Below the pieces are notes generated by a model. That model searched no databases. It was not told where the DNA came from and worked only from the letters and a program-made list of their open reading frames with translations. A program made the position numbers and the translations under genes. A stretch of 64,000 nt of DNA. Source: Trichosphaerium sp. ATCC 40318. Its lineage: Eukaryota; Protista; Tubulinea. Shown in pieces: positions 19,335 to 59,073 of this stretch. The stretch spans positions 1-64,000 of the forward strand of contig JALMLS010000175.1 in assembly GCA_038496445.1 (NCBI GenBank). Direction: 5' to 3'. Numbering within the stretch: position 1 is the stretch's first letter; each line of letters opens with the position of its first letter.

Positions 19335-20471
19335 CTATATGTCAACAAAAATTGCAGGTTGATGCTCTTTCAGCGCTTTGACTCCTTCATCAGTTATATG
19401 TCCACAATTACACAGACCAATAATGTATACACCTGATAAAGCCTTTAATCCTTCATCTGTTACTTTTGTGCGATCCAAGTAAATAGTATGTACACCAGCC
19501 AACGCTTTCAAGCCTTCATCAGTCACATTTGTATATGATAAATCTATAGTGTGCACACCTGCCAATGCCTTGATACCGTCATCAGTTAAAAGTAAACAAT
19601 AAGACAGATTGATATTGTATACACCTGACAACACCTTCAATCCTTCACCTGATACTTTTGTGAATGTTAAGTTAATAGTATGTACACCAGCCAACGCTTT
19701 CAAGCCTTCATCAGTCACATTTGTATATGATAAATCTATAGTGTGCACACCTGCCAATGCCTTGACTCCTTCATCACTTATTTGTTTACAAGATGCCAAG
19801 CAGATAGTATGTACGCCACCTAATGCTTTCAATTCCTTATCTCTTACGCATTGCAGACCGCGTAAATCGATGGTATGTACACCAGACAATGCCCTTATAC
19901 CTTTATCTATGGCATTGCAACCTTGTAAATTGATTTCGTATACCCCAGCCAATGCCTTGACTCCTTCATCATTTATTTGTTTACAACCGAACAAGTTGAT
20001 AGTGTGTACGCCAGATAATAGCTTTAAGTCTTCATCACAAACTCCGGTGATAGATAAATCAATACTGTGAACACCTGCCAGTGACTTAAAGCATTCATTG
20101 TTCAGATTAACATTTGACAAATTAATAGTATGTACGCCTTCTAATGCCCTTATTCCTTCGATTGTTATATCTCCACAACATCTTAAGTCTATTGATCTTA
20201 CACCAGCAAGTAGGTGCAAATACCTATCGGCACGAAATCCAAAGTTCTCCATTGACAAATGTGTATTTTGAAGTAACAGGCTGCCAGAAAGTATGTCTAT
20301 GTTTGTCCTCGAAACCATGATAGAACCATATCCAATGTATTTATGTACGATATTTCGCATGAAATGGCATGTTTGAGCTGATTTGAGTGTAAATACACCT
20401 TGTTTAAGGATATGAACTACTATTTCGACAGGGAGATCAACTATACTCTCATTTGTGGTATTACTTGCCAT
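19335..20471 (-). CDS. F-box + leucine-rich repeat protein, intronless
   Basis: N-terminal IVDLPVEIVVHIL F-box motif, then ~13 repeats of GVHTIDLS..VTDEGxKALA. Confidence 0.9.
   Translation of the reverse strand: MASNTTNESIVDLPVEIVVHILKQGVFTLKSAQTCHFMRNIVHKYIGYGSIMVSRTNIDILSGSLLLQNTHLSMENFGFRADRYLHLLAGVRSIDLRCCGDITIEGIRALEGVHTINLSNVNLNNECFKSLAGVHSIDLSITGVCDEDLKLLSGVHTINLFGCKQINDEGVKALAGVYEINLQGCNAIDKGIRALSGVHTIDLRGLQCVRDKELKALGGVHTICLASCKQISDEGVKALAGVHTIDLSYTNVTDEGLKALAGVHTINLTFTKVSGEGLKVLSGVYNINLSYCLLLTDDGIKALAGVHTIDLSYTNVTDEGLKALAGVHTIYLDRTKVTDEGLKALSGVYIIGLCNCGHITDEGVKALKEHQPAIFVDI
19482..19765. repeat. Identical 92-bp internal direct repeat in the LRR gene (19482-19573 and 19674-19765)
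   Basis: Direct base-by-base comparison; offset 192 nt, in frame. Confidence 0.9.
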
Positions 20472-21128: not shown

Positions 21129-22472
21129 TTAACGTGATGCTTCAAGTTGGTCTTCTTCATATATAATGTCGCTGATACTTATAACTGTGTGTTCTTTGAA
21201 ATAAGTGCGGAGAAGAATATTCTTCTTGAAGAAACCATGGAAGTTCATTGATCCATCTTTATTCCACTTTCTGTAATGACCATCTTTTTTGCCGTTTTCG
21301 TATTGGCATCTTTTTGCAATCTTACCATTTCTATACCATATCTCACAACTACCATGTTTTTTATTATCAACAAAGTTCTTAATCCCCATTATAAGACCAC
21401 TATCATACCATCTTTTATATTCACCTTTTTTTTTATTGTGAGAATACTCACATTCTTTGATCAAAACACCAGATTCTCGCCATACTCGATATCGGCCGTG
21501 CTTGCTGCCACGATGATATGCACTGTCATATTCTAGCTTTCCATTTTTGTGCCATTGTCTAAAATCACCATGTAGTAAACCGTCAACCATATTAAGCGCT
21601 TCGGAAGCATTTTTTCCATTCTTAAAAAAACCTTGGTGTAAGCCATTCTCTTTGCCATCAATATAAAAATTCAATTGACATTTTTCACCACTATCATAGT
21701 ACTTCGTAGCTTTGCCTTGCTTTAAGCCATTTTTATAAGTACACTCATAGATAAGTATACCTTTTTTAGTCTCTGTATATTTTCCTTCTCTTTTTCCTTC
21801 AGTATTATAAAAACATTTCGATGTTGCTGGTGTTATATAGTACTGTCCATGTTGCCAGTGTACTTTTCCTTCAATATCGACTTTCATACAATATCTTTGA
21901 TGTTCGCCGTCTTTCCAATAACTTTCTTCAATGAGCTGACCGGATTTATTCCATATTTTTCTTAAACCATGCCTTAATCCTTCTTTGTAGTGAACTTCTT
22001 CGTGAACTTGACCATTTGGCCCGCACACCAAGTGTACACCTATCGGAGACCCTTTGTTGTATTCCCACTGTCTAGATAGTTTACCATCTATATGGTACTC
22101 TTTAATTTGACCATCAAGCTCTCCTTTATGACATGCTCCTTCTTCTCTTAACAGACCAGAAGCGAACCATTTTTTGTACTCTCCATGTTTTTTACCTTCC
22201 TCATACAACGTGCTGCTATAAAGAACTCCATTATCATGCCACACGCGCGACAAGCCGTGTAGAATACCGTTTTTGTAGTTTATTGCTTTCCAAAGAGAGT
22301 TTCGAGGGTGTGGATAGTTTTTGACAAAACACCCATGTTTTTCAAGATGGCTATTGAACCTAGACGTTAAAGCTGCTTGGTAGTTTAGTAAAGGCCACTT
22401 TACATACACACTACGGTCTAAACTTCTTATTAAGTATTGCAACTCTCCAGGAATACCAAGCAATGTATTCAT
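21129..22472 (-). CDS. F-box-like + MORN-variant (YwqK-type) repeat protein, intronless
   Basis: LLGIPGELQYLI N-terminus; repeated YKxGxKHGxYxxWxxNG units. Confidence 0.88.
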   Translation of the reverse strand: MNTLLGIPGELQYLIRSLDRSVYVKWPLLNYQAALTSRFNSHLEKHGCFVKNYPHPRNSLWKAINYKNGILHGLSRVWHDNGVLYSSTLYEEGKKHGEYKKWFASGLLREEGACHKGELDGQIKEYHIDGKLSRQWEYNKGSPIGVHLVCGPNGQVHEEVHYKEGLRHGLRKIWNKSGQLIEESYWKDGEHQRYCMKVDIEGKVHWQHGQYYITPATSKCFYNTEGKREGKYTETKKGILIYECTYKNGLKQGKATKYYDSGEKCQLNFYIDGKENGLHQGFFKNGKNASEALNMVDGLLHGDFRQWHKNGKLEYDSAYHRGSKHGRYRVWRESGVLIKECEYSHNKKKGEYKRWYDSGLIMGIKNFVDNKKHGSCEIWYRNGKIAKRCQYENGKKDGHYRKWNKDGSMNFHGFFKKNILLRTYFKEHTVISISDIIYEEDQLEASR

Positions 22473-25137: not shown

Positions 25138-25260
25138 TAAGTAAATCAATTGTTAACTGGCCAGGAAAAGTTGTACATATAACGTTGTAGTAAAACAAAA
25201 TAAAGTTATAAATAGATTGTGCTTGTACATGTGAGTTATTTGCAAGAACAGAAAAAAAAT

Positions 25261-25368
25261 GATGAGTATCGAATTGAAGTGTAGTCCGCTACGCTCCGTG
25301 GGGGGAGGGTTGGCAGAAGAGTTACGTTTCGTCAGGAAATCTAAGATGACTACACCTCGTGGCTCATC
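25261..25368 (-). ncRNA. Putative novel Pol III small structured RNA, copy 1 (108 nt)
   Basis: Termini GAUGAG/CUCAUC pair; 11-bp helix GAGGUGUAGUC/GACUACACUUC; poly-T immediately downstream; paralog at 30263-30389. Confidence 0.75.
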
Positions 25369-25392
25369 GATAGAAATATCAACACGTGACAC

Positions 25393-25431
25393 TTTTAAAC
25401 ACGAGCACAAACAAAAAAAATAGTTGTGGGA
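25393..25431 (-). promoter_or_regulatory. snRNA-type upstream promoter: DUSE-like TCCCACAA (25424-25431, -63) plus TATA-like TTTAAAA (-25..-31)
   Basis: Exact match to the Dictyostelium DUSE consensus WCCCAYAA at its canonical ~63-nt distance. Spacing is conserved in copy 2. Confidence 0.7.
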
Positions 25432-25637
25432 AAAAACCTGTGCCAAATTTCTACAGTACCATTTAGATCATAAAAGTGTAAAAGCACCTGTACAGTAGCT
25501 TACTTCAATACGTACTGACAATGTCATTTTCATTGAATGAAATTAATGGCAGCAATGTTAACTTATAAGCACGCTTGCTGAATAGTATCCACAACATTCG
25601 TATCCCTGCAATTACTACCTTTATTGGAGTGGTACAT

Positions 25638-26404
25638 TTAGGCGTCAATCCACTGCTTGATTGGCTCCAGAGAAATAACAGCATTGTACATTTTGCTCAA
25701 ACGAGGTACAGGTTTAAGGTCAAGAGACTCAGGTACAGTCAAAGATACATCTCTTATCATTGATGCGACCAAAATATCTGCGAAAGAAACTTCCTTGCCT
25801 GTACAACCGAGTTAGTCACATTAAACCTACTGAAAACGAATCTACCTGAGAAGTAGTCGCCCTCAGTTTGACCCAAAATGGTGTCAAAGGCTTTGAGTTG
25901 AGTTTTTTGGTATTCAGCAAACTTTTGCTTATCTCCGCCTGCCAACACAACAGGTACCCAAGCATCGCGATAAGAAATGTACGCAGATGCTGCTCTATCA
26001 CTGTGATAGTCTTTGATATCATCAACGCCATATTTACCAAGTTTCTTTGCCATGTATCTTATCATCGGCACATGCTCGCACATGTTAAGACCTTACCCTT
26101 TATCAGAATTGTAACAACCAAGAGTCAACTCTTACCGTTCAAGTGCAAGATTGGAACACCGCCAAAAGGATTCACCCCACTGCTTATAATATTCTCCTTT
26201 TTTTTCAGGCCAAGCGCCAGGGAAATCAATAATCTCCTCAGTAAACTTGATGCCGTTCAATAACATGAAAAATCTAAGTTGATTTAGTTGAGTCTTATTC
26301 AAAGTTGGACAGTACCTGACTGGACCACCGCGTCCTCCAAGTTTACCAAGCTGAATGTAAGTGAACTTTGGAGTACATCCGATTTTATCGTTCGCTGTTG
26401 TCAT
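25638..26404 (-). CDS. Glutathione S-transferase family protein; multi-exon
   Basis: KFTY..GGRGGPVRFFMLLNGIKFTE, NPFGGVPIL (after a homopolymer +1 shift) and a C-terminal helical GST domain. Confidence 0.8.
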
Positions 26405-26852
26405 TGTTGTTGTTCTTTCAATTTGTGATGAAATATTATTTTTGTAATTTTCTTCCACTTTCTCCGTTTAGAAATCGTTCCTCGGCAACCATTATTGTGT
26501 ACTAACAGATTAATCGCTGTGAGTATTGCTTACTGGTTTATTGTAGTTTGACTGATAGTGTTTGGGTTCTCCTCGGGTCACTTTCCTGATATAGTAATTG
26601 ACCCTCGTTAGTTTTTTCAAAATGTACCTGATGTAATCTTACGTGTAAAAAATCCAAAGCGGTACACCACAAAAGGTTACTCTAATTACATAGAAACAAA
26701 AAACCACATTGTTGTCAGAAATACACTTTGTACGATAACACTACGTTCTAGAAAACCATAGCTATTTTAAGTGGCTCTACAATATAGTTTTCAGTGAAAT
26801 GAGCTTAAGTCTACACAGTTTTGATTCTAATGCAGTTTACCAGACATTAAAC

Positions 26853-28723
26853 ATGGGAGGCGCTGTTTCTGCCCTATCGCCTGAAAAAAAGGTAGAATTG
26901 AAAGCCAACTTCGAGGCTTATTGTAAAAAAGCCGCTCAAGAAATCGCCGACGCAGATATATGTACGCCAGTAATATACAATCGCTCGTGACGGGTTTATT
27001 TGTCTAATACTTGATTAGTTTTATTATCTACAGGCGCAGGGTTCTCCGCAGATAGCGGTTTAGCCGTTGTACGACTCCATTCGTTTTTTGTAACAGTCAA
27101 ACCACAGTTTTTTCGCCCAATTTAGCTAACCCAAACCCGAAAGTTACCGGTTTTCTTATTGCACCTAGTACAAAGATATTGCAGATATAGATGTCTACCA
27201 CGAGAGAGATTTGAGTTACCATGATATATGTATACCTGACTGGGTAAGTGTTTTATTACATGAAGCGCAATTCCGTTAAAAATGGCAGCAAAAAAAAATT
27301 CAACTTTCTGACAATTTCTTTATCTGACGTTTCCTTATAGGTTAAACATGAGCCCAACTTGTTTTATGGGTTCTGGGGTATGTGCTTTAATGACTATAGA
27401 GAGTGTAAGCCTCATGAGGGATACTATATTATAAAACGATGGAAGGAAGAGCTATTCTCAAGCAACAAAAAATGGGACGAAGTTGCAAAAGTTTATAAAT
27501 CTGTACGTCTTGTTTTTCATTTCACAGAAATGAGTTTGGTTTTTTTTGCCTAACAAGCAGAAAAGGACCTCGCAGAGGAAATGAAGGCTTTGTCTATCTC
27601 TGAAAAAGACGGAAGTGAGAGAAGTCACTTTTTAAGTGCCGTGAAACCAGAAGAAGGAAGTAAAGAAGCGGGTAATATATTTCTTTGAGATGAATCTTAC
27701 TGTGGTTTTTCACTGACAAAAAAAAATAGGACCGTTCTTTGTTTATACAAGTAATGTCGACGCTCATTCGATATACCCTGGACTTTTCGGTGTCCATGAA
27801 GTGGTTGAAATACATGGGTATGTACTGCAGGTTTCTTTGAGTTACTTGGGCTTAACATAGTGACAGGAACACTGAGACTTGGCAGTGCGCATCACATTCA
27901 CAGTGTGATTTAAAATTATGGAAAGCTCCTGCGGATTTTAAGTTTAACGTTGATAAAACTACCATGTACGCTCGTAAACAAGAAATCGAATCTGAGCATA
28001 AAGGATGGCAAAACAACCAACCAACGTACGACATTCACAGATATTTTGATATAAGTTCATTCAAACCCAATGGTGCTTAATCGTGATTTTCAGCTGCCCT
28101 GATTGTGGTGGACCTGCTAGACCTGCTATTCTTATGTTTGGAGATATGGACTATATAGCTGATAAATATGGATCACGTGCATATCATATATGGGAAAAGG
28201 TACATACAAACCAAACGTTTGAAACTAAGACTTATATAGCGTGCAACTGCTTGCGTTAACAAACTTGGTGCAAAGGCAGTTATACTTGAGGTTGGATGTG
28301 GTAACAATGTACGTTATTTCTGTGAAGCAGCAACCAAATAACAAACTACTTAAGGTTCCTTCTGTACGCTGGCATGATACTGGTCTTGCAAAGAATTATT
28401 GGGGTGTAGATAAATCAACTCTTATTCGTGTAAACCCAGATTTCCCTCTATCTGACAGTGATGAATGTCCTGTTATACCAATTATGGCTAAGGGATTAGA
28501 CACAATAAAGGAGATTGATAAACATCTAAGAGCTATCCTTGAAGCTCGAAAGAAAGCAAAAGGAGCAACAGAGGAAGTAAAAGTAGTCGAAACTGAAGAA
28601 CAAACGAAAGAAAGTGATGAAGTAAAACCTAAGGTAGACACAACGGAAGTAAAAGAAGACGAAGAAGAAGTATCAAAGGAAACCAAAGAAGAGGTTGCAA
28701 AGGAAGACGAAAAGAAAAACTGA
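26853..28723 (+). CDS. Sir2-family NAD-dependent deacylase with acidic C-terminal tail; multi-exon
   Basis: TGAGFSADSGL, TSNVDAH, EIHG, CPDCGGPARPAILMFGD, LEVGCG, LIRVNP. Confidence 0.9.
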
Positions 28724-28902
28724 TTAATCACGTATAATCGGCCTGTCAACAGACATAAAGAACTTGCTGATCTAGTATTCAATAAAATGTTATCCCTAAA
28801 AAACGACGCTCTAAAAGCCCATTTTCTCATAAAAAAGAAATGACAACCCAGCACCGTTTGATTACACGTGAACTAAAATATTTCAACCTTTTTGACTTAT
28901 TA

Positions 28903-30067
28903 TTACATTACTGAGCATGCTCCTTCTTCTTGCTTAGGATCTCCGGTATGCCAAACAACACCTAAAAGAAAATAAAAACAAAACACTTGTTACCTTCTTC
29001 AAAAAATGAGAAAAAAAACCATTGACTACATACCTTCACTCTGCGCTTCAATTGCTTTAAGAGCTGCTTCATGCTTCAATTTCAATACCTGTTCATTAAA
29101 CATTTCAACATAACCACAATTCAAGCATGTAAGAACTAGCAAAGGCGCTTCAGAGTCATCCTAACACCGAACATTAACTTTTTTTTTCAGCCAGTAAGAA
29201 AAAAAAAGAACATGTCATTCTTCTACCGCCGAGATGTCGGTTCCTTACCTCTCCTTCGATGAACTTATTCACGACACGTGTAAACATTGTCTTATGCGTT
29301 AAGAAAAGAGTTGTTTGGGCTATATCTACTTTAGTTTGTCCGCACTTGACGCATTTATAGTTTTTTCGTAAGCGGTCCAAAGGATTTTGAGCTCTGAGTC
29401 TGAATCTAGGTATAAGCCTTTCTTCCGCGTGTTTTGCGAGGCTTTCTAGTGTTACCTCTTTTCCTAAAGGAAAAATGAGTGCTGTTGATTGTGAACAAGA
29501 TTTACCTTGTTGTGCAAGCGCTATGAGCCTACAGGCGATACAAAAATCAGGGAATTGAAGCTCCTTCTGATTTTTAGTATTTGCTAGCGTCCAAATCTTT
29601 CTAGAAGTCGTCAGTACTACACCCGACGCTACATGCGTATGATATATTACCCCAGCAAGTTTTTAGGAAGACCAGAGTATGCGAGAAATTTAGCGTCCGT
29701 CTTTCAATAATTAACGTATTGTAGGTTGTATTTTAATACGTACGAATCCGACAGCGCCATCTCCGTCTTTATCTGCGAGTTTAAAAATGTTCCTGTACAC
29801 TTGCTCTTCTGTTAATCGTAGTGGTACATCTGCGAAAGCCTCGGGATCGTCTGAAGCGTCAACTGTGTCATCTTTTGACTCCATTGAAATAACTGTATCA
29901 CCCTTTGGCTCATCGGCCTCATTTGGCTCTGATGCGCTTACGTCGCTTGATTCAGGAGCGTTGGTAGCTACTGCGCTTTCTACAACTTGTTCTTCTACAG
30001 CGGTTGGTTTAGCTTCTTCTGTATCATCTTTTTGTTCTACTGGAGTGTAATCAATGTCTGTGCTCAT
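28903..30067 (-). CDS. EH-domain protein with Cys4 zinc ribbon and C-terminal CaaX; multi-exon
   Basis: FKLADKDGDGAVG..SGLPKNLLGKIWTLA..FCIACRLIALAQQG (EH domain); YKCVKCG...LTCLNCGYVEMF; ends CSVM*. Confidence 0.78.
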
Positions 30068-30262
30068 TATCCAACCGATTACAATTCGTTACAAATGCTG
30101 TGAAACAGTTTTACTTTTCTAGTCAATAGTTTTCACGTAAGCCTCGCTCACAATTCTACAACTGACCTATATCAAAGCACTCAATTACCCAATGTAAAGA
30201 GTCCACCGTACTGGTTTCTTCAACTGGATCAAATGACAAGACGGTAGAATAAGAAAAAAAAA

Positions 30263-30389
30263 GATGAGTGTCGAATTGAAGTGCAGTCCACTACCTCCAG
30301 ATTGCCCGACATCGTCGTCAGGCAGGGAGGTAGACAGAAGAATTACGTTTCGTCAGGAAATCTAAGATGACTACACCTCGTGGCTCATC
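30263..30389 (-). ncRNA. Putative novel Pol III small structured RNA, copy 2 (127 nt)
   Basis: First 47 nt identical to copy 1; same terminal helices; longer GC-rich variable hairpin; T9 terminator. Confidence 0.75.
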
Positions 30390-30413
30390 GATAGAAATAA
30401 CAACACGTGACAC

Positions 30414-30453
30414 TTTTAAACGCGAACACAAACAAAAAGAAAAAGTTGTGGTT
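30414..30453 (-). promoter_or_regulatory. Upstream promoter of ncRNA copy 2: DUSE-like AACCACAA (-64) plus TTTAAAA (-25..-31)
   Basis: Position-conserved relative to copy 1; one mismatch to the DUSE consensus. Confidence 0.6.
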
Positions 30454-30935
30454 GAAAATGTACCAAATTTCTGCCAGTTAGAAACCAGAATAGCATAACA
30501 TGCACCTCAACGTGAAAGTGTTGTCAGTTGCTACAATTAGTATGTAGAAGAAATTATCTTGATGACGTCACCGCACGACAAAAATGACTTAAGTCTTTTC
30601 GGTCTTTTGAACAACAAAGCAAAAACCGCTTACACCTTTGAAAAAAGTGCAAGGTTTCAGGCGTTTCATCACGTGTATTGCAGAAAAAGTAGTGCTGACA
30701 AAGTCAATGTTTTACTTAACAATTGATGCTGCGTAATTTGTACAAAACGACACAACCTCAAGCCGAAAAAACTAAAGTATCTTTACTTTTCCAAAACGGA
30801 AGACTGAAAGTAGGACTGTTTCGTTCCAACCCCTGTCTCATGGTGTAGATACACAATTACACGTTCTAACTAAATAAGGCAAAATAGCTGAAAATACAAA
30901 GAACGTAATACAAGAAGGTTTAAACAACAGATGTA

Positions 30936-33643: not shown

Positions 33644-34855
33644 TTAAATTATTACTGTAGCACCATCAAAACCTTGAATGTCACTTCCTTTTATGTGCTG
33701 ACAACCAAATAGCATAATCATATTTACACCTGTTAATGCATTAATTCCATCGATAGTAATAAAATCACAATGGCTTAAATCAATTGTATGAACACCAGCC
33801 AACGCTTTAATACCATCATCTGTTACACGAGTATTACTTAAATCAACTGTATGTGCTCCTGCCAAAGCCTTAACACCAACATCTGTGATATTTACACAAT
33901 AACGTAAATCAATGGTATGAACCCCAGCTAGTGCTTTAACACCTTCATCTGTGATTCCCTCACAATGACATAACCTAATTGAATGAACTCCAGTCAACGC
34001 TTTTATACCATCATCTGTTATATAACTACAACAGCTTAGACTTATTTCTTGAACTCCAGCCAATGCTTTTACACCAACATCTGTGATGCCATCACGACAA
34101 AATGTTAAATCAATGGAATGAACTCCTGCCAATGGTATAATACCTTTATCTGTGATTTGGTTGCAATGACTTAAACAAATTACTTCAACTCCAGCTAGCT
34201 CTTTAATACCATCATCTGTAACATTCTTACAATCACTAAGATCAATGATATGAACTCCAGCAAGTGCTTTAACACCTTCATCTGTGACATCACAATAGCT
34301 TAACTTAATTGAGTAAACTCCAGCCAATGCTTTAATCCCATCATCTGTCACATGTTCACAAAAGCTTAAGTCTATGGTATGAACACCAGCTAACGCTTTG
34401 ACACCAATATCTGTTATGTTGGTATCAAATAACGTTATCTTTTGTATGCCAGCAAGTTGCATAAGATGATCATCTGTCAGTTTCTTTCCACGTCCAAAGT
34501 CAATACTGTTAACAATGTTAAAGTCTGTAAAATCAATATCTGAGGACATTTTCGGTATGAAGAGTTCATACACTCCCTGTAGGTATTTCAAGTGCTTTTG
34601 CTTTAGACAAAACCATAGACTGAGTTTGTTGGACTTGATGAGCTGTGGCGCTGTTTTATACAGTTTTTTCAGCTTCTTTTTAGATTTAATGATAATAAGT
34701 CGTATATCTTTGTATCCCAAGTGCTGTATTGCGATATTAGCCAATATTTTAGATGTATGCACTACTGAGTGCAAAGAAAACAATGAAACGTATTGTAGGA
34801 TATGAACAATAAGTTCAACAGGAATTTCATCAAAGAAAGACGTGTTTTGGTTCAT
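33644..34855 (-). CDS. F-box + leucine-rich repeat protein, intronless (paralog of 19335-20471)
   Basis: FFDEIPVELIVHILQY F-box motif; ~12 GVHTIDLS..ITDxGVKALA repeats. Confidence 0.9.
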   Translation of the reverse strand: MNQNTSFFDEIPVELIVHILQYVSLFSLHSVVHTSKILANIAIQHLGYKDIRLIIIKSKKKLKKLYKTAPQLIKSNKLSLWFCLKQKHLKYLQGVYELFIPKMSSDIDFTDFNIVNSIDFGRGKKLTDDHLMQLAGIQKITLFDTNITDIGVKALAGVHTIDLSFCEHVTDDGIKALAGVYSIKLSYCDVTDEGVKALAGVHIIDLSDCKNVTDDGIKELAGVEVICLSHCNQITDKGIIPLAGVHSIDLTFCRDGITDVGVKALAGVQEISLSCCSYITDDGIKALTGVHSIRLCHCEGITDEGVKALAGVHTIDLRYCVNITDVGVKALAGAHTVDLSNTRVTDDGIKALAGVHTIDLSHCDFITIDGINALTGVNMIMLFGCQHIKGSDIQGFDGATVII

Positions 34856-57674: not shown

Positions 57675-58628
57675 TCATCCACTGCCTTGGTATAAAACTT
57701 GTACTTGCATTCCTTGTTTGCACATAGCATGCATTATTAATTTACCTTCTTCTGACCATTTTTTATACTCTCCTTCAAGCAAATCATTGAGAAAGAAACA
57801 TGTTTTTCTTAGTTTTCCATTCGTATACCATTCTTTGTACTCTCCATTCTTTTTGTCTCCAATATAAAACGCTTCTTCTGCTATTTTCCCATTCGTAAAA
57901 TACTCCTTATGTGGTCCATCGCGTAAGCCTTCTTTAAAAAAGGAAGTCTTAGCGAGAACACCTGTACAATGCCATTCTTTTTGTTCACCATTTTTTACAC
58001 CATCAATAAGCGTACATGTCAATTGTAACTGTTCGTCATCTCTCCAAGTAGTATACTCTCCGCTTTCCTTACCATCCTTAAAACAACTCTGACTTCTAAT
58101 ATTACCATTCGACGCCCATGTCTTACAAGAACCATCCTTGACGCCATGCTTATAATGAGAAAGTTCGTACTTAAGGCCTGACTTGGGAGAATATTCAATG
58201 TATTCTCCATGTAACATATCGTCTACCAAATGACACGTGATAAAAGATACGCCATCGCTATACCACGTGCTATACAGACCTTGCTTACCCTTTGGACTCC
58301 ACACGGCTTGCTCACGTAGAAAGCCATTTTGGTGCCAAGTTCGATACTCTCCGTCATAAATGCCGTTTTTATAACAACACTCTTTTCTCGGATTACCGTT
58401 AGCGTACCATGCTTGACATTTTCCTTCGTATACGCCGTCTTCGTAGGTTACAGAATAAATAACTTGGCCCGACGCGTTCCATCGCTTCCAGATGCCATTC
58501 TTTTGCAGTTTTTGGTTAAATCGGGACGTTGTAGCTGTTTTTTTGCAAAGTATAGGCCAAACTATATAAGTTCGCTTCGTGGCAATATAAATAGCGTTTT
58601 GAAGCTCAAGAGGTAAATTCAACAGCAT
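57675..58628 (-). CDS. F-box-like + MORN-variant repeat protein, intronless
   Basis: MLLNLPLELQNAI; repeated YxDGxxxGEYxxWxxNG units; paralog of 21129-22472. Confidence 0.88.
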   Translation of the reverse strand: MLLNLPLELQNAIYIATKRTYIVWPILCKKTATTSRFNQKLQKNGIWKRWNASGQVIYSVTYEDGVYEGKCQAWYANGNPRKECCYKNGIYDGEYRTWHQNGFLREQAVWSPKGKQGLYSTWYSDGVSFITCHLVDDMLHGEYIEYSPKSGLKYELSHYKHGVKDGSCKTWASNGNIRSQSCFKDGKESGEYTTWRDDEQLQLTCTLIDGVKNGEQKEWHCTGVLAKTSFFKEGLRDGPHKEYFTNGKIAEEAFYIGDKKNGEYKEWYTNGKLRKTCFFLNDLLEGEYKKWSEEGKLIMHAMCKQGMQVQVLYQGSG

Positions 58629-59073
58629 TTTGTACTTAATCAATTCTAGTTACGCGGATATTGCCTTAGGCTCGTTATATAAGTGCAAGAGAAGCGAAAT
58701 TTCGCGTACGGTGGGAGATTGAAGTGATAGGTAAAAATAACTGCGATAACCACAAAATTGGCTTAATTGTATGTTGCCTTACTGTTAGTTTTGACATGTT
58801 CATTCAATTTTCTCTACGCCTACAATATGTTAATAGGCGCTTGTAAACCCAATTTGACAAACTTTACAATTTCTCATCTACAATCCACTACAATCAGCTT
58901 CCAATGACACGCAGTATCAACGACAACATTGTATTAGTTCACATAGTGTACAGAACCGGGTTTGAGTTTACCCTTTTAACAAAATGTGAAGACTCGGCGT
59001 AAAAAAAACGCCGATTTTGAGTGAAAAATCCGGAGCAACAGAATCTCCATTGGTTTTAAACGCAAATATTACG

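Follow-up and report, generated by a model that had tools for sequence, protein, structure and literature searches.

The 64,000-nucleotide (nt) stretch of DNA from Trichosphaerium sp. ATCC 40318 analyzed here (the window) encodes, twice and on the minus strand, a real small RNA and not a chance pattern. The two loci are probably active genes, each with its own promoter, for a single abundant and structured small RNA of the Pol III type, for which a role in an RNP can be proposed by analogy. Judged by its sequence, the RNA is outside all catalogued RNA families, and it is best read as an unclassified, lineage-restricted RNA whose closed-ends architecture is like that of Y, vault, and Class I RNAs.

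A first-pass annotation, made from the sequence letters alone, had described two homologous noncoding minus-strand blocks of ~200 bp, and alignment of the copies bore this out. Common to both blocks are a promoter, an RNA body, and a T8 or T9 run, with homology extending on the minus strand from about −84 to the T run, whereas the flanks cannot be aligned and show 37 to 40% identity in the pairwise comparison of copies 1 and 2, which is the random level. The RNAs are 108 and 127 nt long, as had been proposed, with an identical first 47 nt, and the 21-mer at the RNA start occurs only twice in 64 kb (expected, 0). Identity between the copies is 90% in the promoter (−84 to −1), 100% over RNA nt 1 to 47, 61% in the variable hairpin, and 90% over the 3′ 30 nt. 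Promoter and RNA are thus selectively conserved, and this unevenness, with random flanks around a conserved promoter and RNA, indicates that the duplication is old and that promoter and RNA are under constraint. The features are as follows (X2 and X3 are RNA sequencing runs, introduced below).

25261 to 25368, minus strand: RNA copy 1, 108 nt, 5′ end at 25368 (from sequence, fold, X2 contig, and covariance model).
25252 to 25259, minus strand: T8 run of copy 1, directly after CUCAUC-A, a putative Pol III-type terminator that is kept in copy 2.
25393 to 25399, minus strand: TATA-like box TTTAAAA of copy 1, −31 to −25 (sequence, alignment, and pattern search).
25424 to 25431, minus strand: USE/DUSE-like box TCCCACAA of copy 1, −63 to −56 (sequence, pattern search, and literature).
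25439 to 25452, minus strand: conserved upstream block AGAAATTTGGCACA of copy 1, −84 to −71, the outer limit of homology.
30263 to 30389, minus strand: RNA copy 2, 127 nt, 5′ end at 30389/30388 (sequence, fold, X2 and X3 contigs, and covariance model).
30254 to 30262, minus strand: T9 run, putative terminator of copy 2 (sequence and copy alignment).
30414 to 30420, minus strand: TATA-like box TTTAAAA of copy 2, −31 to −25 (sequence, alignment, and pattern search).
30446 to 30453, minus strand: USE/DUSE-like box AACCACAA of copy 2, −64 to −57 (sequence and pattern search).
30459 to 30472, minus strand: conserved upstream block AGAAATTTGGTACA of copy 2, −83 to −70 (copy alignment).

Expression was assessed with contigs from public RNA runs, namely, X2 (total-RNA-like), X3 (SMART cDNA), and X1 and X5 (poly(A)-type). 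Minus-strand transcripts had been predicted from both loci, and X2 contained contigs over both RNA bodies, with a depth of 732 over positions 25267 to 25350 (copy 1) and of 171 over positions 30269 to 30380 (copy 2); neighboring mRNAs had depths of ~0.4 to 10 in the same run. At this locus, the X2 contigs were confined to the two RNA bodies, the promoter bin being 0, and X2 represents RNA because neighboring genes appear in it as spliced contigs. In X3, a contig of copy 2 carried the reverse-complemented template-switch oligonucleotide directly abutting 30389/30388; this junction maps the 5′ end of copy 2 to within 1 nt of the prediction. The adapter orientation was identical at all three ends seen, and it fits a minus-strand RNA. 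Expression, strand, and 5′ end are thus shown, and the 3′ end and exact size of the RNA are predicted. The X2 contigs begin at C10 and, for both copies, break off 6 nt before the 3′ helix strand, which could be a library artifact or reflect processing. X3 further yielded a third variant, in which the downstream flank differs.

The positions of the upstream elements, previously given as boxes at −63 and −64 together with TTTAAAA at −31 to −25, agreed with our pattern search in both copies, and the T8 to T9 runs said to follow the RNAs were found at 25259 to 25252 and 30262 to 30254. The combination of box and TATA motif is present at these two genes alone in 64 kb (expected, 0.17), and the USE/DUSE-like box is separated from the TATA-like box by about three helical turns. 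Both copies therefore have the type 3 (U6-type) arrangement of an upstream PSE/USE-type box and a TATA box near −30, and both have oligo(T) (T8 and T9) at the RNA 3′ end. As this genome, with 37% GC, is not that of a Dictyostelium, “DUSE” denotes a resemblance; the box resembles DUSE and the plant USE equally, and the spacing resembles that of Pol III genes. The Dictyostelium DUSE is used by Pol II and Pol III genes alike, and the plant USE, with the consensus RTCCCACATCG, likewise serves both polymerases. In plant U6 and U3 genes of type 3, some three helical turns separate the box from a TATA box near −30, and these genes have a purine start and an oligo(T) terminator. From this layout we infer that the two genes are transcribed by Pol III. 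They are like U6 and the plant U6 and U3 genes in upstream box, spacing, TATA, purine start, and oligo(T), but their RNA shows no similarity to U6, U6atac, U3, 7SK, MRP, RNase P, or SRP RNA, and Rfam found no U6 or other snRNA gene within the 64-kb window.

Both RNAs folded better than 200 of 200 shuffled sequences (z = −3.4 and −4.0). The predicted fold contains the terminal GAUGAG/CUCAUC helix and the 11-bp helix that had been noted before, and both are present in both copies. Helix 1 (6 bp) pairs nt 1 to 6 with nt 103 to 108 of copy 1, and helix 2 (11 bp) pairs nt 11 to 21 with nt 83 to 93, with one pair that is U-A in one copy and U-G in the other and with GGUGU paired to ACACU inside it in both. 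Between them, the perfect 6-bp helix is followed by a 4×9 loop or by a 3×3 loop plus a 5-nt bulge. Helix 1 and the helix 2 core have pairing probabilities of ~1, and the base of the 11-bp helix and an alternative 3-bp register compete with each other (44% versus 56%). Beyond helix 2, a conserved, mostly unpaired stretch of 34 nt (nt 22 to 55; 25347 to 25314 in copy 1) leads to a variable hairpin, which is short in copy 1 (nt 56 to 81). The extra length of copy 2 had been placed in one internal hairpin and is indeed a single hairpin extension, in which CUACCUCC/GGAGGUAG is lengthened by UGCCUGAC/GUCGGGCA (30333 to 30291). In X3, copy 2 occurs in a variant with four differences, all of them structure neutral: a U-G pair that becomes C-G, a C-G pair that becomes U-G, an extra base in a loop, and a bulge base. 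Among these two to three near-identical sequences there is no real covariation, and two apparently compensatory pairs disappear when the alignment is shifted by 1 nt. For nt 22 to 55, the longest antisense match in the window was 10 nt, and shuffled sequences gave 10 to 11 nt.

These features suggest how the genes may work. The external promoter (a CCACAA box near −63 with a TATA-like element at −31 to −25) and the oligo(T) end form a U6-type (type 3) Pol III layout. The transcript starts with G or A at 30389/30388 (25368 in copy 1) and is predicted to fold into a closed-ends “panhandle,” in which an asymmetric internal loop separates the terminal helix of 6 bp from a helix 2 of 9 to 11 bp with GUG/CAC; beyond helix 2, the conserved and mostly unpaired 34-nt stretch leads to one hairpin that is free in sequence and length. 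Such an RNA might serve, as Y, vault, and dictyostelid Class I RNAs do, as the stable, protein-bound RNA of an RNP. By the same analogy, the 3′ oligo(U) could bind La, the paired ends could protect against exonucleases, and the invariant 5′ half (helix 2 and the open stretch) could be the platform for a binding partner; the La-bound RNP role and the existence of such a partner are what these parallels lead us to infer.

The RNA had not been recognized as a spliceosomal snRNA, tRNA, or SRP RNA and had been taken for an undescribed family, and Rfam agrees: at the gathering score, the search of the whole window matched it to no family, and at an E value of ≤10, searches with 500-bp and 131-bp stretches gave only chance-level matches to unrelated families. 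A covariance model scored 138.5 bits for copy 1 and 164.7 bits for copy 2 and found neither additional nor decayed copies in 64 kb, so the check that had been suggested against decayed SINE/MITE-type copies came out in favor of genes in this window. A scan of metagenomes with a 22-mer gave no match, and an 18-mer gave 19 matches, all attributable to chance, with 0 to 11 of 29 flanking bases agreeing; one of these lay in a bacterial-looking contig from a human-gut metagenome. The viral and prokaryote genome collections contained no relatives, leaving no homologue outside this organism in the metagenome, viral, and prokaryote collections, and a literature search for the sequence itself found nothing. 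The earlier proposal of an undescribed, independent Pol III RNA family is thus supported, where Pol III is deduced from the layout and “family” means two to three near-identical genes.

Closed-ends Pol III RNAs such as Y, vault, and Class I RNAs are abundant, and their function is poorly understood. To our knowledge, almost nothing is known of closed-ends small Pol III RNAs outside animals, trypanosomes, and Dictyostelia. A bolder reading, which we hold tentatively and at slightly less than even chances, is that with this RNA a new class of abundant Pol III transcripts from nondictyostelid amoeboid protists has its first member; it would be a larger analogue of Class I RNAs, under the control of a CCCACAA-type box whose position and Pol III spacing match those of the dictyostelid DUSE and the plant USE. 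Dictyostelid Class I RNAs are 42 to 65 nt long (up to 85 nt), start with (AA)G, end with CUGU, and have an 11-nt motif adjoining the 5′ stem strand; there are dozens of genes per genome, and they are reported to be restricted to Dictyostelia. The Trichosphaerium genes share with them a CCCAYAA-type box ~60 nt upstream, T runs downstream, a short stem joining the ends, a conserved single-stranded motif by the 5′ stem strand with a variable remainder, and high abundance. However, the RNA has twice their length, finishes with CUCAUC plus oligo(U), and is seen in two to three copies; it does not fit the Class I definition, and there is no Rfam match. If the new-class reading were true, the snRNA-promoter grammar would be far older and more widespread than its description from Dictyostelia suggests.

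Vault RNAs are Pol III transcripts of 80 to 150 nt with paired termini and a central domain whose length varies between clustered paralogues. We consider it unlikely that the two genes supply this amoeba with its vault RNA, which TEP1 would bind and which would be packaged into vault particles. The likeness covers the size class of a small Pol III RNA, the paired termini, the length differences in the central domain, and the clustering of paralogues, which lie between unrelated protein genes; the slot is also vacant, in that no amoebozoan vault RNA sequence is described in the literature searched. By eye, a box A-like (GAGCCACGAGG) and a box B-like (AATTCGAYACT) match, both weak, can be found. 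Vault RNA genes depend on internal A and B boxes, however, and here these are weak at best and poorly matched, with two sequences only to judge by, whereas the conserved 84-bp region upstream favors an external promoter. The Rfam Vault model gave no match, and there is no evidence of TEP1 in the genome.

A highly diverged Y RNA, bound by Ro60 (TROVE) through its lower stem and having a GUG/CAC upper stem and a pyrimidine-rich variable loop, is also improbable. Y RNAs and stem-bulge RNAs are described as having a lower stem with the Ro60 site, an upper stem, and a variable internal loop (PMC4726728), and the size, type 3-like promoter, oligo(U) end, paired ends, and variable loop of the Trichosphaerium RNA fit that description. 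As in Y RNAs and the nematode stem-bulge RNAs, there are ~100 nt, a U6-type promoter, two stems, and genes in small clusters of paralogues; the loop is C/U rich, and GUG/CAC in helix 2 agrees with the upper-stem motif (A/G)UG-CA(C/U), although so short a motif (3 bp within an 11-bp helix) may occur by chance and carries little weight. What argues against a Y RNA is the lower stem, where the Ro60 site, defined by a 7-bp helix, a single bulged C, and a 3-nt bulge across from it, cannot be recognized and its place is taken by a perfect 6-bp helix followed by the 4×9 or 3×3 loop. The loop is variable in Y RNAs, whereas here its long open stretch, nt 22 to 55, is invariant, and the Rfam Y_RNA model gave no match, even at an E value of ≤10 on the 131-nt RNA alone.

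An snRNA-type gene, of the Sm class or another, that Pol II would transcribe from this sort of upstream box has to be weighed, since both polymerases use DUSE and the plant USE. It is very unlikely, given the TATA-like element at −31 to −25, a distance from box to TATA of about three and not four helical turns, the T8/T9 run at the RNA end, the lack of an Sm site in both copies, and the lack of Rfam matches to snRNA families. A SINE/MITE-like repeat or a functionless, dead duplicate would account for there being more than one copy and for the third X3 variant with its other downstream flank; this we regard as extremely improbable, with decayed copies absent in 64 kb, constraint strongly uneven along the unit, and both copies highly expressed. 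Because the copies are also homologous over ~84 untranscribed bases ahead of the mapped 5′ end, a SINE-type retrocopy made via RNA is ruled out. A spliced-leader RNA donating nt 1 to 43 at AAC|GUAAY, which would account for the invariance of exactly nt 1 to 47, has next to no probability: GUAAY agrees with the local 5′ splice-site pattern GTA[CA] and the invariance stops just past AAC|GUAAY, but all three neighboring mRNA 5′ ends (3/3) join the template-switch oligonucleotide to genomic sequence and are leaderless, no contig of the poly(A)-type runs X1 and X5 touches the leader region, the Sm site is absent, the terminator is of the Pol III type, and the 3′ part is conserved too.

Further candidates were rejected by eye. 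CUGACGA, as in a hammerhead, is present, but stem II and GAAA are not in place and Rfam is silent; AUGAUGA, as in a plus-strand C/D-box RNA, is present, but a D box is absent and the reads and the template-switch oligonucleotide indicate the minus strand. Against a telomerase RNA, the sole C-rich stretch is not the same in the two copies, and no 1.5-repeat template lies in the conserved part. U4, U5, U6atac, U11, U12, U1, 5S, and the SRP Alu domain have, by eye, only short chance words in common with the RNA.

Two active genes for a structured Pol III-type RNA, as preferred here, would provide a clean case in a little-studied protist, with defined gene boundaries, a mapped 5′ end, high expression, and invariant versus free parts, and this anatomy makes partner identification by pull-down as well as knockdown directly feasible. 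Their promoter is a data point for deep conservation of the USE/DUSE-plus-TATA grammar, with spacing that would specify the polymerase. Were the RNA found to bind Ro60 or TEP1, amoebae would have their first described Y or vault RNA. As for the surroundings of the genes, the long open reading frames in the 64-kb window encode repeat proteins, an exact look-up of the window's protein products found nothing, and a search for homologues of the window's proteins returned only distant, mostly bacterial-type MORN proteins with 22 to 34% identity.

The two loci are a real, expressed and selectively conserved gene pair encoding a small RNA with a U6-type layout, and the RNA is unclassified. The RNA bodies are as follows.

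25368->25261, minus strand, RNA body of unit 1 (copy 1), followed by A and T8
30389->30263, minus strand, RNA body of unit 2 (copy 2), followed by T9

All coordinates and motifs in the first-pass annotation were correct when both units were re-checked, and the 21-nt RNA start occurs twice in the window (0 expected). Pairwise alignment of the units with 200 to 300 bp of flank per side defined the limits of homology, which begins abruptly at about −84 (AGAAATTTGGYACA) and ends at the T-run.

Sequence identity between units 1 and 2, by segment
Far upstream segment: 40%, chance level for the composition
Promoter, −84 to −1: 90%
RNA nt 1 to 47: 100%
Internal hairpin region: 61%, the lengths differing by 19 nt
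Last 30 nt of the RNA: 90%
Downstream segment: 37%, chance level

With flank identity no better than random, enough time has passed since the duplication for sequence free of constraint to be randomized; most of the RNA and the 84 bp of untranscribed upstream sequence have been kept constant.

All evidence for expression consists of assembled contigs from four public RNA sequencing runs (X1, X2, X3, and X5), each of which contains spliced contigs with GT..AG joints over neighboring genes and is thus RNA-derived. The transcripts predicted by the first-pass annotation were found in the total-RNA-like run X2, with contigs over the bodies of copy 1 (25267-25350; depth, 732) and copy 2 (30269-30371/30380; depth, 171), against depths of ∼0.4 to 10 over neighboring mRNAs, 0 in the promoter bin (25382-25572), and 0.6 in the bin downstream of copy 1. 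Illumina adapters adjoin the sequence at 25267, 30269, and 30380, indicating short inserts of about RNA size, and at all three of these ends the read-1 adapter lies on the low-coordinate side, an orientation consistent with a minus-strand RNA sequenced from a stranded library. In the SMART-type cDNA run X3, one contig (30259-30389) continues into the reverse complement of the template-switch oligonucleotide, placing the 5′ end of the RNA at 30389 (G) or 30388 (A) on the minus strand, no more than 1 nt from the predicted start; the two positions are ambiguous because the G's of the oligonucleotide are inseparable from a templated G. No contig of the RNA was present in the two poly(A)-type runs, X1 and X5, from which a small RNA without a poly(A) tail should be missing. 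In both copies, the X2 contigs start at C10 and finish 6 nt short of where the 3′ helix strand ends, and these matching end points may reflect a library artefact or trimming of the terminal helix in the mature RNA; random-primed libraries usually lose extreme RNA ends. The X2 contig over copy 1 also carries one extra C at 25299, within the tract of six C's in the loop of the variable hairpin, which is either strain variation or a slippage-prone homopolymer. The X3 contig with the template-switch oligonucleotide, whose RNA is copy-2-like, extends 227 nt past the T-run with sequence that the window lacks, and this tail is either a third locus with terminator read-through and polyadenylation or an assembly chimera.

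Both RNAs fold far better than their shuffles, none of 200 being as good (z = −3.4 and −4.0 for copies 1 and 2). In a partition-function analysis, the terminal helix (GAUGAG/CUCAUC) and the core of the inner helix, helix 2 (GGUGUAGUC/GACURCACU), had pairing probabilities of ∼1, and two rival registers (44% and 56%) competed at the base of helix 2. Nucleotides 22 to 55, which are near-identical between the copies, were mostly unpaired (0.53 to 0.74) and had no antisense match above chance within the window. The long hairpin of copy 2 is formed by CUACCUCC/GGAGGUAG with the extension UGCCUGAC/GUCGGGCA; copy 1 has a short, imperfect hairpin at this position. The single change in helix 2 keeps pairing, as had been claimed (U-A versus U-G), and is one-sided. 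Two sequences provided no real covariation, and two pairs reported by RNAalifold as changed on both sides were lost when the alignment was shifted by 1 base. A third variant, from the X3 cDNA contig, differs from copy 2 by four structure-neutral changes: U-G to C-G, C-G to U-G, one added base in the hairpin loop, and one changed base in a bulge.

The window has a GC content of 35 to 40% and thus does not come from Dictyostelium, whose genome is far more AT-rich. The combination CCACAA-N24-34-TTTAAAA occurs in the window only at these two genes (0.17 expected). The upstream box had been read as the Dictyostelium upstream element (DUSE); it is present at about −63, but the sequences TTCCCACAAC and CAACCACAAC equally resemble the plant upstream element (USE), RTCCCACATCG. 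The DUSE lies ∼60 nt upstream of dictyostelid noncoding RNA genes, and its describers did not expect conservation outside Dictyostelia (PMC7919456). The centers of the box (∼−59.5) and the TATA-like element (−28) are ∼31 bp apart, roughly three turns, and this distance, together with the T8/T9 run, supports RNA polymerase III, which probably transcribes both genes. No snRNA or tRNA gene was found within the window. A perfect CACGTG palindrome, an unusual feature in a U6-type core promoter, is found in both copies downstream of the TATA-like box and ahead of the start (25382-25387 and 30403-30408, minus strand, about −19 to −14), inside the invariant stretch AAAAGTGTCACGTGTTG.

In anatomy, the RNA resembles the closed-ends polymerase III RNAs: its paired 5′ and 3′ ends leave a short overhang of 3′ oligo-U, and the fold further comprises a second helix, a conserved platform, and a freely varying module. 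Y RNAs, vault RNAs, and dictyostelid Class I RNAs share this anatomy. Rfam searches yielded no family match in any mode, including Y_RNA, Vault, U6atac, other snRNAs, SRP, MRP, 7SK, and telomerase RNAs, in agreement with the earlier proposal that no known family is involved. A GUG/CAC element in helix 2 would suit a Y RNA, but we consider both a Y RNA and a vault RNA improbable, given the lack of an Rfam model match for either and of a recognizable Ro60 site for a Y RNA; the A/B boxes of the vault type are weak. A spliced-leader RNA was also considered, as invariance between the copies ends just past AAC|GUAAY, matching the local GTA[CA] splice-donor pattern; it was rejected, since at the 5′ ends of the three neighboring mRNAs the template-switch oligonucleotide is followed immediately by genomic sequence and X1 and X5 contain no leader-bearing contig. 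RNA-mediated spread as a SINE is excluded because the homology takes in 84 untranscribed upstream bases. A covariance model of the pair scored its two members at 165 and 138 bits and everything else in the 64 kb at ≤12.8 bits; there is thus no halo of decayed copies in this stretch. Searches of metagenome, viral, and prokaryote collections and of the literature yielded no relatives, a result of little weight because amoebae are hardly covered by those collections.

By analogy with Y, vault, and Class I RNAs, La would bind the U-tail and the terminal helix would protect against exonucleases, helix 2 and nt 22 to 55 would serve as the binding site of a particular protein or pair with a target, and the variable hairpin would be dispensable. 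The finding is solid and of moderate weight, new lineage-specific small RNAs being expected in unexplored protists; its importance would rise with a partner or with a promoter grammar demonstrated to be common to plants and Dictyostelia.

Three ordinary genes with no link to RNA function lie between the copies.

25603-26419, minus strand, GST-like gene
26832-28733, plus strand, sirtuin-like gene
28800-30127, minus strand, EH-domain gene

All three are spliced, with very short introns (40 to 100 nt), a 5′ splice-site consensus of GTA[CA]G, and a 3′ end of YAG. In cDNA contigs, transcription of the EH-domain gene begins at two sites, ∼30127 (X3) and ∼30081 (X5), which lie only 127 to 180 bp downstream of the copy 2 terminator on the same strand. 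Long intron-free ORFs for LRR_6 and MORN_2 repeat proteins are located at 19338-20471, 21132-22472, 33647-34855, and 57678-58643, all on the minus strand; the closest database relatives of a 447-amino-acid MORN ORF, mostly of the bacterial YwqK type, are just 22 to 34% identical.
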